Positions 51,935 through 55,200 of a stretch of 64,000 nt of DNA are shown piece by piece (positions within the stretch are counted from its first letter, which is position 1; each line of letters opens with the position of its first letter). Both the position numbers and the translations under genes were made by a program. Origin of the DNA: Bugula neritina. Taxonomy: Eukaryota > Animalia > Bryozoa. Below the pieces are notes generated by a model. It was not told where the DNA came from. It worked only from the letters and a program-made list of their open reading frames with translations, and did not search any database. The stretch covers positions 1,364,001 to 1,428,000 of the forward strand of contig OZ037772.1 in assembly GCA_964035545.1 (NCBI GenBank). The letters run 5' to 3'.

Positions 51935-51976
51935 TTATATAAAAAATTGATTTTTATTATTTTATTATTTTATAAT

Positions 51977-52213
51977 ATGGAGTTTACTATTGAATTACTC
52001 GATAAACTAATCGTTCAAGCTAAACAAAAAAAATATATACCTCTTCCCGAACATACATTTATGCGATTAACCGATTATTCTACCTTAAATATTAATTCCA
52101 TGTCGAATGAAGATCGAGATAAATTATTTAAACATTTTAATAAAAATTTAACATCGCGGCGTAAAGTAACTAAACTTAAAGCGCAAATAAAAAAAATTCT
52201 CGAAGACGTATAA
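51977..52213 (+). CDS. Small basic hypothetical protein (78 aa from ATG 51977)
   Basis: MEFTIELLDKL..; the TTG start at 51947 in the ORF track overlaps the upstream AAAATTGA motif, so the ATG is preferred. Confidence 0.6.
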   Translation: MEFTIELLDKLIVQAKQKKYIPLPEHTFMRLTDYSTLNINSMSNEDRDKLFKHFNKNLTSRRKVTKLKAQIKKILEDV

Positions 52214-52270
52214 AACCTATTTTTTATTAAAAAATTGATTTTATAGTTTAAAGATTTTTTTACTATATAA

Positions 52271-55200
52271 ATGGAGTTTAATACAAAAATTACCGTAAAA
52301 GTTTTAAAGGCTTTAGCTAAAGAAAGAGGATTGAAACGATATTCTCAATTAAAAAAAGCCGAACTTATACGGCTATTATCGCCTATGGACGAACCCGTTC
52401 CGAATATAGGACAAGCCCCGTTAATACCTACACCCGTAAAAAAAATTATGCGAGAAATATTTACGCAAACTACGCGTAATATAAAAAAATGGGTTAAGGG
52501 TATTGTAAAGCCAATTGGAAAAATTGTAAATCCAATTAAGGATAAAATTATGGCTTTATATAATCAGCCTAAGCTTAAAGAACAAGCCGCTAAAGGTTGG
52601 TTTCAAACTTATGAAATTAAGGGTTTACCCAAATACGATATAAATTCATTTAGTAAATTAGTAAAATTAAATGTAATAAAATTATTAAAACCTACTATAA
52701 AAGTTAAAATATTTATGTATTGCGAAATGGAAAAAATTAATGTACGTACCGGAGAAACTATTGTAGAAATTATGCCATTTACATCAAATATTGAAACTAT
52801 ATTAGAGTCTACGAATATTAATGAAATATACGATGAAATAATTGAACGTATAAAAGAAAATTTTGCTTCGTTAAACGCAAAAGGAAGTAGCTGGATGTTT
52901 AAAGCCATTAAAAAAATGGAAATTAATATTAATAAATATCAACCTCTTAACGGATCATCGTGGATTGATCTTCCAAAAGAAATTAAATTAAAAAAAGCCG
53001 TAATAAATCCTAAAAATGAGGATAATAAGTGCTTTATGTGGGCCATTTTAATGAGTGTTCATACGCCTAAAAACCACCCCGAAAGAATTAGTAATTATAA
53101 AGAACACGTTAATAAATTTTCATGGGAAGGAGTAGAATTTCCCGCTACTAAAAAATCTATTGACGCTTTTGAAGAGGTTAATTCCGATTTTGGAATTAAT
53201 GTATTTCCGTGGGACGGCAAAACAATAAATTTATGGAAAAAAACTAAAAATCAGGGTAAAATTATAAATTTATTTTATATAAGCGACGACAAAAAGAGTC
53301 ATTACGCTTATATTAAAAATTTAAATAAATTACTCGGTTCGCAAATAAATAAACGCGTTAGCGCTAAACATATTTGCGTAAATTGTATGAATTCGTTTCG
53401 ATCTAACGAATCTTTAAAAAAGCACCAAGATTGGTGTTTAACGAATGACGGTGTAACTACGGTCTTTCCGAAAATAGAAAATAAAATAAAATTTCAGTCT
53501 AGTCATTATTGCCGTAGTATGAGAGTGCCATTTACGATATACGCGGACTTTGAGTGTTTTACTAAACCAATATACGGTTGTAAACCTAATTTTAAAGAAA
53601 GTTATACTAATCAATATCAGCAACACGAACCATCAGGCTTTGGATATTATATAGTAAGCATTACCGGCGAGTGTAATTATAGAAGTTATACCAAAGAAAC
53701 CGAAGACGAAGATATTGGCGAACAATTTATAAGATTATTAGAGTTTGACATTAAAAACTTGTATAAGAAACATAAGTTTGCTAAACGAATGAGAATTACG
53801 AATAGTGAGCAAGAGTCTTTCCAATTAGCCGAAAATTGTTATATATGCGAAGAAAAATTAGGCGATGACAGAGTGAGAGATCACTGCCACTTAACCAGAG
53901 ACTATAGAGGAGCGGCTCATAATAATTGTAATTTAAATTATAAAATTCCAAAATTTTATCCAATATTTATTCATAACTTGTCGGGTTATGACGCCCACTT
54001 ATTTATTAAAAATTTAGGCGGTGAACCTTCGTGTATACCTAATACCGAAGAAAAATATATATCTTTTAGTAAAAAATTATTAGTAGACGAATTTATCAAT
54101 AATAAAGGTGAAAAAATTAAAGTTACGCGTGAAATTCGCTTTTTAGACTCGTATAAATTTATGAGTTCTAGTTTAGCGAGTTTAGTAGCGAATTTAAAAC
54201 GCGATGACTTTAAACATTTGCAAAAACAATTAGACTGTTACGCGGAAAAACAATTAGACTTATTGTTAAGAAAAGGAGTATTTCCGTATGACTATTTTAA
54301 TAGCGTAAACGTATTAAATGAAAAATATTTACCGCCTAAAAAAGAATTTTACTCGAGTCTAACCGAGAGTAATATATCGGACGAGGATTACGAGCACGCT
54401 CAAAAAGTTTGGCAAGAATTTAATATGAAAACGTTTAAAGATTATCACGATTTATATATGAAAGTCGATGTATTACAGCTAGCCGACGTTTTTGAAAATT
54501 TTAGAAACGTATGTTTAAAACATTACAAGTTAGATCCCGCTTGGTATTATACGGCTCCGGGTTTAAGTTGGGACGCTATGCTTAAAACCACTAAATTAGA
54601 ACTAGACCCAATTACCGATGTTGACCAATTACTCTTCTTTGAAAAAGCTATTAGAGGCGGTGTAAGTATGATCAGTCATAGATACGCTAAAGCCAATAAT
54701 AAGTATATGGAAAATTATAACGCTAGCGAACCTAGCAGTTATATTACTTATTTAGACGCTAATAACTTATACGGTTGGGCTATGTCCAAAAATTTACCTA
54801 CGAGTAATTTTAAGTGGATGACTGAAAAGCGATGTAAAGACTTGGAAAAAAGTTTAAATTTTCCACCTAGCTTTTTAGAAGTAGATTTAGAATATTCTAA
54901 AGAGCTACACGACTCGCATAAAGATTATCCATTTTGCCCCGAAAGAATAATAATTAACAAAGTAGAAAAGTTGGTGCCAAACTTAAATAATAAAAAGAAT
55001 TACGTTATACATTATAAAGCGTTAGAACAATGCCTTATGTACGGCTTAAAATTAACGAAGATTCATAGAGGTATAACCTTTAACGAATCAAATAAGTTAG
55101 AAAAATATATAAAATTAAATACCAAATTAAGAACTTTAGCTAAGAGCGATTTTGAAAAAGATTTCTTTAAGCTGATGAATAATTCCGTGTTCGGTAAAAC

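Follow-up and report, generated by a model that had tools for sequence, protein, structure and literature searches.

The element and its genes

The window analysed here, a stretch of 64,000 nucleotides of Bugula neritina DNA, contains one complete element of 14.36 kb (positions 43736-58094) with 15 ORFs, all of them open. The first-pass annotation had proposed a Polinton, and the terminal inverted repeats and gene families do identify a member of the Polinton/Maverick type. The left inverted repeat (43736-43894, + strand) pairs with the right (57933-58094, - strand) at 98% over 159 nt, with 3 mismatches. Its outer ~95 nt form a G+C-rich palindrome with a trinucleotide-repeat tip (DNA fold -36.5 kcal/mol, z -10.4). 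The left copy of a 6-nt target-site duplication, ACTATG, lies at 43730-43735, at a break in the phase of a host 16-nt satellite; the right copy occupies 58095-58100. The element tips, 5'-AG...CT-3', and the duplication were read by eye, the latter being shown by the satellite phase. Such tips and a 6-nt duplication are reportedly features of the Polinton/Maverick family, as set out by Kapitonov and Jurka in 2006. No further copies or fragments of the element were found in the 64-kb window.

At the left end, on the - strand, are orf298 (44031-44927), with ~120-nt tandem repeats and weak tail-fibre-like matches, and an A32-like packaging ATPase (44931-45689; Pox_A32, E 2.2e-08, 34.3 bits against a cutoff of 22.8). 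A perfectly palindromic spacer of 12 nt (45690-45701) separates the ATPase start from that of the divergent integrase (45702-47066, + strand), which has an rve core (E 1.2e-08, above cutoff), a chromodomain and, near its N-terminus, a PLA2-like domain. The chromodomain points to life in chromatin. A tandem array (47065-47182; 31-nt unit, 3.5 copies, with a 12-nt sub-repeat) fills the gap before orf268 (47197-48003), which heads the capsid block on the + strand. There follow orf103 (48007-48318), the double-jelly-roll major capsid protein (48340-49614; PF21738 DJR-like_dom, E 5.7e-58, 3287 relatives), orf252 (49615-50373), the position of which would fit a minor capsid protein, and orf189 (50386-50955). 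Except for the major capsid protein, these ORFs have no family match, and profile searches of orf252, orf268 and orf189 gave no match to the single-jelly-roll minor (penton) capsid family. A non-coding stretch of 499 nt (50956-51454) then lies between convergent gene ends and contains two orphan copies of the gene-start box described below.

To its right is orf159 (51455-51934, - strand), which starts with ATGGAGTTT behind its box, its start mirroring that of orf78 (51977-52213, + strand). The rest of the rightward block consists of the polymerase-like ORF (52271-55939), a candidate adenain-like protease of 137 aa (55932-56345), for which the Peptidase_C5 match is weak (E 0.0047, 17.1 bits, below the cutoff of 21.3), orf170 (56346-56858), without a family match, and the paralogues orf175 (56855-57382) and orf174 (57379-57903), all on the + strand. 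The ten ORFs without a family match are all of 298 aa or fewer. In agreement with the first-pass annotation, none of the 15 ORFs contains a detectable RNA polymerase family, and none a transcription-factor family either. All of the named protein relatives are from animals (coral, scallop and bryozoan), which bears out the earlier description of an animal element. Closer relatives, at 81-98% identity, occur in metagenome contigs, and those of the scallop, bryozoan and coral assemblies are at 44-62%. T-runs, counted as a general check on whether T-rich terminators are avoided, are scarce on the sense strand of all genes; a coding bias of Lys over Phe can explain this scarcity.

The polymerase-like ORF encodes 1222 aa, with a SAP/Rho_N N-terminus and an endonuclease-VII-like insert. 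By eye, and judged against known patterns, motifs of a family-B exonuclease and polymerase can be made out in order along it, and they make a family-B polymerase a strong lead for its identity. Searches of Pfam, PHROGs, NCBIfam and, by sequence and with a 14-row profile, the PDB matched it to no polymerase family or solved structure, and the Pfam organellar/viral family-B model was among those not matched. The AlphaFold model of residues 560-1222 is poor (pLDDT 42). Most relatives of this ORF begin Met-Glu, which is uninformative on the sequence upstream. The neighbouring orf78 encodes a small helical protein with a weak AlphaFold model (pLDDT 65, pTM 0.26). It is conserved, with seven homologues at 88-26% identity; the one at 26% is a protein of 1707 aa and the others are of 56-92 aa.

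A word shared upstream of two adjacent genes

The 15-mer TAAAAAATTGATTTT is present in identical form at 51940-51954 and 52228-52242, both on the + strand, as the first-pass annotation had reported. Identity between the copies stops at 15 nt, with different flanks on either side. Copy 1 is 22 nt before the ATG of orf78 (51977) and overlaps the box of the divergent orf159; since orf78 is a conserved small protein, this copy precedes a real gene. Copy 2 is 28 nt before the ATG of the polymerase-like ORF (52271). For the 8-mer core (51943-51950 and 52231-52238) the distances are the 26 and 32 nt originally given. The copies thus share one orientation and a near-equal distance to two consecutive start codons. 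Copy 2 lies 14 nt past the orf78 stop codon and copy 1 has no preceding gene on its own strand. TATA-like words were seen by eye upstream of or over both. A 13-letter piece of the left context of the 15-mer, also noticed by eye, reappears near 51073 in the non-coding stretch. A splice-acceptor or branch-point role for the word was considered and rejected, there being no AG before the orf78 ATG.

On the + strand of the whole 64-kb window the 8-mer is found only at these two sites, and its - strand copies, at 6551 and 19159, are both beyond the limits of the element. No further ORF has the exact 8-mer in the 60 nt ahead of its start; the genes for the integrase, the ATPase and the protease-like protein are among those that lack it. 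With one mismatch allowed there is a single case, 53 nt before orf268 and within the tandem array.

The region had been flagged as very AT-rich, and rightly: the spacer of 42 nt has a single G or C (2% G+C), which is the G of the 15-mer itself, and that of 57 nt is 10.5% G+C. Across the element the 8-mer is at background frequency, an outcome that the first-pass annotation had named as one that would refute its proposal, while its placement is non-random. Two copies on the + strand and none on the - strand compare with 1.5 and 0.66 expected from dinucleotide shuffles (~2.2 on both strands). The probability that at least two genes have the sense-strand core within 60 nt upstream is 0.003 under a whole-element Markov null and 0.005 under local permutation. 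For an exact 15-mer common to the two spacers it is 0.003-0.007, and for one common to any pair among 14 upstream regions ~0.02. Shuffled spacers have common words of ~9 nt on average, and of at least 12 nt in 5-7% of trials. The presence in both spacers of an 8-mer specified beforehand has a probability of 1.3e-5 if the copies are independent, and of 0.002-0.006 if they go back to one local duplication. A pure chance origin of the word shared upstream of two neighbouring genes is unlikely.

A TATA-like box abutting the start codons

A much stronger signal than the 15-mer is a TATA-like box that adjoins the ATG of 13 of the 15 ORFs. The window has 19 such boxes against ~4 expected, 13 of them exactly on ORF starts, and the box goes together with gene spacers of 0-12 nt. 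The first-pass annotation had suggested an early (replication) and a late (TAAATG) programme. This clean split fails because the box heads the polymerase ORF as well, along with the ATPase and the integrase. At the same 13 starts the box has the form of the poxvirus late initiator, TAAAT followed by G or A, overlapping the ATG. The share of A+T is raised at about -27 to -11 upstream of the starts, with low information per column, when examined for a poxvirus-type late core, a T-containing A+T-rich stretch of ~20 nt placed 5-7 nt before the initiator. Poxvirus late mRNAs carry non-templated 5' poly(A) leaders.

The box includes a hexamer resembling a poly(A) signal and, at several junctions, the stop codon of the preceding gene, so that other roles are possible. 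The idea that it serves purely for polyadenylation of the gene before it was rejected, the first genes of divergent pairs being boxed too. The box and the first three codons are common to orf159, orf78 and the polymerase ORF, which shows local copying of short start modules.

Comparison with viral promoters and helper-dependent elements

The identity of the 8-mer with the Mimivirus early motif, and its likeness to the vaccinia early core, are confirmed in the literature (PMC5294985). The vaccinia core is found between -13 and -25 relative to the start site, and the Mimivirus motif upstream of ~45% of genes (PMC5294985). The same review quotes a DNA-polymerase promoter of invertebrate iridescent virus 6, of 19 bp at -19 to -2, the first 10 letters of which are, by eye, those of both 15-mer copies. 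In location the 8-mer agrees with the Mimivirus-type definition, within ~100-150 nt upstream of start codons (PMC5294985, PMC11464507); the Mimivirus-type enrichment over many genes is not seen, with two of the 15 genes carrying it and an element-wide count at background. The element resembles the nucleocytovirus systems in the same eight letters, the A+T-rich spacer, the distance of tens of nucleotides before the start and the position ahead of a DNA polymerase, and differs from them in encoding no cognate polymerase or early factor. The box recalls the late start-site boxes of poxviruses (TAAAT plus G/A) and of ASFV (TATATA, -1 to +5), in that a TATA-like box lies over the start, a likeness which for this element is one of sequence.

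That virophages carry promoters of their helpers, as had been noted, is true of PgVV-14T (bioRxiv 10.1101/2022.07.28.501842) and Sputnik (PMC11998528). In the former, a Polinton-like virophage, five genes are headed by the early motif, the DNA polymerase gene among them (bioRxiv 10.1101/2022.07.28.501842); helper motifs are present on Sputnik genes (PMC11998528). Like the present element, PgVV-14T is small, encodes a capsid and no RNA polymerase, and has the motif before the DNA polymerase and few other genes. Its host, however, is an alga (Phaeocystis globosa), its helper is a known mesomimivirus with the motif at 93 sites, and it has a tyrosine recombinase and another polymerase type; its helper dependence has been observed, whereas here there is the DNA sequence to go by. 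Mavirus, the endogenous Cafeteria virophages and Sputnik are likewise integrated or integrating small dsDNA viruses with helper-virus promoter motifs, and mavirus has an rve-type integrase, as this element does, and a protein-primed polymerase. They differ in carrying mainly the late motif of the helper and in having protist hosts, whereas this element has its capsid relatives in the genomes of animals.

Among animal elements, those from entomopoxvirus occlusion bodies, described as Polinton-like viruses (PMC11296320), are proposed hyperparasites of nucleocytoviruses. They carry an adenain-type protease and a parvovirus-type PLA2 (PMC11296320), to be compared with the weak protease candidate and the PLA2-like domain of this element. 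They differ in their highly divergent capsids and in that a primase-helicase or tyrosine recombinase stands in place of the pPolB and rve pair, and no promoter analysis accompanies them in PMC11296320. In structure the element resembles animal Polintons and adintoviruses, which have the inverted repeats, 6-nt duplication and 5'-AG...CT-3' tips, the rve integrase with chromodomain, the A32-like ATPase, the double-jelly-roll capsid, the large polymerase ORF and the PLA2-like domain; chromodomain and PLA2 have been described for adintoviruses (PMC8502044). Unlike these, the present element has a polymerase ORF without a family-B match, a protease match below cutoff, a PLA2-like domain fused to the integrase and a two-fold over-representation of CpG. 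Neither a published analysis of promoters in animal Polintons nor a paper tying this motif to them turned up in the literature search.

Interpretation of the shared word

We tentatively favour, at a little under even confidence, the reading of the 15-mer as a shared cis-regulatory word that couples two adjacent genes and is read most probably by the nuclear machinery of the host. On this reading the word is genuinely duplicated, its copies occupying the only A+T-only spacers, two in number, that head the rightward block, and it might serve as a core-promoter element or factor-binding site coupling expression of orf78 and the polymerase-like ORF. It would act on top of the box abutting the ATG, the second and much stronger gene-start signal. 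The analogy with adenoviruses and the descriptions of adintoviruses make the host nuclear transcription machinery the most likely reader of the word, possibly together with a factor of the element. The placement (P 0.003-0.02, depending on the null), the chromodomain and the adintovirus transcripts reported from fish tissues, where no giant virus is mentioned (PMC8502044), speak for such a host-read word. In its favour are also the agreement of the two copies in orientation and spacing, the lone G of the 42-nt spacer falling within the word, the conservation of orf78 and the completeness of the element. Reading by Pol II is also geometrically possible for orf78 and the polymerase ORF because of the TATA-like words near both copies. 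On the other side are the number of copies, only two and in one element, the background count of the 8-mer, and the recurrence of the left context near 51073, which fits low-complexity drift. The box is a further consideration: placed directly on the ATG, with spacers of 0-12 nt, it is a poor fit to canonical Pol II initiation and a better one to nucleocytovirus start-site boxes (PMC5294985).

The word could instead be without function and have arisen in A+T-rich spacers by chance or by neutral local duplication, its likeness to a giant-virus motif being coincidental; this we consider rather unlikely. Spacers of such extreme composition, the ~9 nt that they share after shuffling, the background count and the recurring piece near 51073 are all what it would predict, and the box and three codons common to orf159, orf78 and the polymerase ORF indicate that modules have been copied locally. 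It accounts less well for a 15-mer that stays at P ~0.02 family-wise and an 8-mer positioned at P 0.003-0.005, or for two copies that point the same way and stand almost equally far ahead of two real genes in succession. That the word is a promoter of nucleocytovirus early type, so that the element would be transcribed by a co-infecting large DNA virus in the manner of a virophage, may be so, though we consider it unlikely. The motif is the Mimivirus one, resembles the vaccinia core and has the 10-letter match to iridescent virus 6 (PMC5294985); vaccinia-type geometry would put transcript starts ~14-20 nt before both ATGs; PgVV-14T and Sputnik carry such motifs (bioRxiv 10.1101/2022.07.28.501842; PMC11998528); and the finding of a pre-named 8-mer in both spacers is improbable if the copies are independent (1.3e-5). 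The 13 boxes resembling the poxvirus late initiator and the ASFV start-site box, the lack of a detectable RNA polymerase, and the animal precedents and speculation (PMC11296320, PMC8097293) point the same way. If there was one duplication, however, a match to one of perhaps 10-20 A+T-rich viral motifs, at 0.002-0.006 per motif, is not rare. Two of 15 genes have the motif, the supposed late box is on the polymerase ORF too and the integrase and ATPase are without the supposed early word. There is also no known helper, no nucleocytovirus sequence in the window and no link in the literature between the motif and animal Polintons, while the chromodomain and integration imply nuclear residence. Very unlikely, in our judgement, is a role unconnected with transcription initiation, such as binding of an element protein in control of replication or packaging, or a signal for transcript ends or gene junctions. 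Other repeated non-coding words do exist in the element (the array before orf268, the palindromes of the inverted repeats and the orphan boxes), and copy 2 lies just 14 nt beyond a stop codon; but no gene precedes copy 1 on its strand, each copy lies a similar distance ahead of an ATG, and the binding protein is purely hypothetical.

Implications for animal Polintons

Animal Polintons/Mavericks could be autonomous viruses of the nucleus or could rely on large DNA viruses, and the element bears on this question. For the virophages of protists, the sharing of promoter words with a helper is accepted as the first clue to dependence. For animals, Mavericks have been proposed as a virophage-like immunity against iridoviruses in vertebrates, without sequence evidence (PMC8097293). 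The present element may, though we think it unlikely, be an intact animal Polinton with an early-type promoter on its replication genes and a poxvirus/ASFV-like start box on the others, and thus an integrated, helper-dependent hyperparasite of a large DNA virus that infects a marine invertebrate. If so, the published speculation that animal Mavericks behave as virophages do would gain its first support at the level of sequence. The element supplies two concrete words that can be checked, the 15-mer before orf78 and the polymerase ORF and the start-site box of 13 of the 15 genes. If both are conserved, the question of helper dependence becomes directly testable; if not, the element is simply a Polinton that is well preserved and lies in A+T-rich surroundings.

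Results

An identical 15-mer is present on the forward strand at 51940-51954 and 52228-52242, the identity extending beyond neither edge. Within it, an 8-mer core (51943-51950 and 52231-52238) stops 26 nt short of the ATG of orf78 (51977-52213, forward strand) and 32 nt short of that of the 1222-aa polymerase-like ORF (52271-55939, forward strand; below, the polymerase ORF); re-reading of the sequence bore out the pair and both distances as given in the first-pass annotation. The 8-mer occurs nowhere else on the forward strand of the 64-kb window, and its two reverse-strand copies are both far outside the element. 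By eye, the left context of copy 1, a 13-letter stretch of box plus A-run, recurs at 51073-51085, inside a 499-nt non-coding region and without an ORF behind it.

A separate TATA-like box, TATAAATG or TAATAAATG, directly adjoins the ATG in 13 of the 15 ORFs of the element (ATGs at 45689 and 51934 on the reverse strand, and at 45702, 47197, 48007, 48340, 49615, 50386, 52271, 55932, 56346, 56855 and 57379). Over both strands of the element it occurs 19 times against about 4 expected, and the columns upstream of the ATG that carry most information are those at -8 to -1. Orphan boxes are found at 50975 and 51333, within the non-coding stretch. The box is kept where ORFs touch or overlap, and on both genes of divergent pairs. 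The ATPase and integrase share a 12-nt perfect palindrome (45690-45701), and the starts of orf78 and the diverging orf159 form an inverted repeat that includes the first three codons (51926-51939 with 51971-51985). Both divergent pairs are thus mirror-symmetric.

Judged from sequence, the box marks gene starts far more strongly than does the 15-mer, which would be an extra on two genes, on top of the box. An early replication programme and a late TAAATG programme had been proposed. The polymerase ORF, ATPase and integrase alike carry the box, and the 15-mer is absent from the scanned upstream regions of the integrase, ATPase and protease-like genes; therefore a clean early/late split fails.

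The element (43736-58094) is a complete Polinton/Maverick type, as proposed, with terminal inverted repeats (TIRs) and a target duplication. Its named genes code for an A32-like ATPase, a double-jelly-roll capsid protein and an rve integrase that also bears a chromodomain and a PLA2-like domain. An adenain-like protease match is weak, under its cutoff. All 15 ORFs are open, with zero breaks counted. Each TIR is 159 nt long, and the two are 98% identical (3 mismatches). The outer ~95 nt of each (43736-43833, and the right end to 58094) is a G+C-rich near-perfect palindrome, with a DNA fold of -36.5 kcal/mol (z -10.4) and trinucleotide repeats at its tips, which would lend themselves to protein-primed replication that starts by sliding back. 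On either side of the element lie the duplicated 6 nt of a 16-nt host satellite, and the array runs on past the insertion (43472-43735 and 58094-58627). More satellites are present in the window at 40094-40732, 58619-58825 and 60184-60893.

The integrase (45702-47066) has its PLA2-like domain, of parvovirus VP1 type, at residues 57-125; a coral relative is annotated as a single protein of 2088 aa in which integrase and polymerase parts are fused. Between the integrase and orf268, a tandem array (47065-47182; 31-nt unit x3.5, 12-nt sub-repeat) fills the 130-nt gap; it heads the capsid block and may be a separate regulatory array. orf298 contains about four ~120-nt tandem repeats (44248-44735) and has weak matches to phage tail-fibre families; its product may be a repeat protein or a fibre-like one. 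The tandem paralogues orf175 and orf174 (56855-57903) have nearly identical upstream stretches, the longest shared word being 21 nt. Among 1.8 billion representatives orf78 has 7 homologues (88-26% identity). Six of them, at 56-92 aa, are close to it in length, and the seventh, at 26%, is a 1707-aa protein; orf78 is therefore probably a real gene.

Family and structure searches with the polymerase ORF matched zero polymerase families and zero solved structures, and its predicted structure model is poor. Its translation carries, in order, candidate family B exonuclease and polymerase motifs, picked out by eye against known patterns. Divergent PolB unlike the Pfam type has been noted in many animal elements (PMC8502044). 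The ORF also has an N-terminal SAP/Rho_N domain and, at ~residues 466-555, an endonuclease-VII-like insert common to 13 of 14 alignment members.

For the capsid and polymerase proteins, the named relatives (44-58% identity) come from scallop, bryozoan and stony coral; the nearest (81-98%) are on metagenome contigs. The CpG observed/expected ratio of the element is 2.04 (G+C 0.307), a two-fold excess, in a host whose flanks are depleted (0.26 at 14001-43400 and 0.48 at 58900-64000). Being so far from equilibrium, the element's CpG content suggests a recent arrival in the host genome. Elsewhere in the window lies a G+C-rich Ty3/gypsy remnant (7071-13575) with domains of protease, RT, RNase H and integrase. 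At least 6 ORF pieces make up its pol region, which therefore has at least 5 interruptions. Named relatives of the remnant are known from spiders, insects, fish and a sea anemone. Given these relatives and the CpG-depleted flanks, the host is very probably an invertebrate; the window does not resemble human DNA.

Discussion

The 15-mer could be without function, through chance or neutral duplication. The 8-mer count in the element is at background (2 forward and 0 reverse, with 1.5 and 0.66 expected from 2000 dinucleotide shuffles), a result that the first-pass annotation had held would count against its proposal, and the strong A+T-richness of which it warned is extreme in the two spacers (one G/C in 42 nt; 10.5% G+C in 57 nt). 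In addition, ATGGAGTTT opens each of orf159, orf78 and the polymerase ORF, with a near-identical box just before it, so start modules have been copied locally in the element. Placement upstream of genes is, on the other hand, non-random. That two genes should have the core in sense orientation no more than 60 nt upstream has P 0.003 against a whole-element Markov null, and P 0.005 when each upstream window is permuted locally. For the exact 15-mer, P is 0.003-0.007 in the two spacers and about 0.02 for any pair of 14 upstream regions. The chance that both spacers contain the pre-named 8-mer is 1.3e-5 for independent copies and 0.002-0.006 for a single local duplication. The 15-mer is probably functional on this evidence, and lack of function is unlikely.

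A reading by a co-infecting nucleocytovirus had been proposed. The 8-mer is indeed the published early motif of Mimivirus, where it precedes about 45% of the genes; it is similar to the vaccinia early core, which lies at -13 to -25 (PMC5294985). The first ten letters of the 19-bp DNA-polymerase promoter (-19 to -2) of invertebrate iridescent virus 6, as quoted there, match both window copies by eye. Virophages do carry helper promoters: in the Polinton-like virophage PgVV-14T the motif precedes five genes, the polymerase gene among them (bioRxiv 10.1101/2022.07.28.501842), and helper motifs are on Sputnik genes (PMC11998528). A TAAAT(G/A) initiator is typical of poxvirus late promoters and a TATATA start-site box of ASFV (PMC5294985). 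Polinton-like viruses are harboured in entomopoxvirus occlusion bodies (PMC11296320), and virophage-like immunity against iridoviruses has been proposed for vertebrate Mavericks, without sequence evidence (PMC8097293). No paper linking this motif to animal Polintons was found. The exact motif, fitting geometry, start-site boxes and gene spacers of 0-12 nt favour a helper, as does the lack of an RNA polymerase gene, which was upheld by family searches of the 15 ORFs that matched neither RNA polymerases nor transcription factors. However, the chromodomain integrase and integration itself point to nuclear host machinery, and the helper reading is unlikely. Another role for the 15-mer is very improbable.

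The preferred reading, held tentatively and at a little under even confidence, is that the 15-mer would be a regulatory word common to orf78 and the polymerase ORF, read in the nucleus by host machinery. Likeness to adenoviruses would, by analogy, speak for nuclear reading, for which adintovirus transcripts reported from fish tissues (PMC8502044) were also counted.
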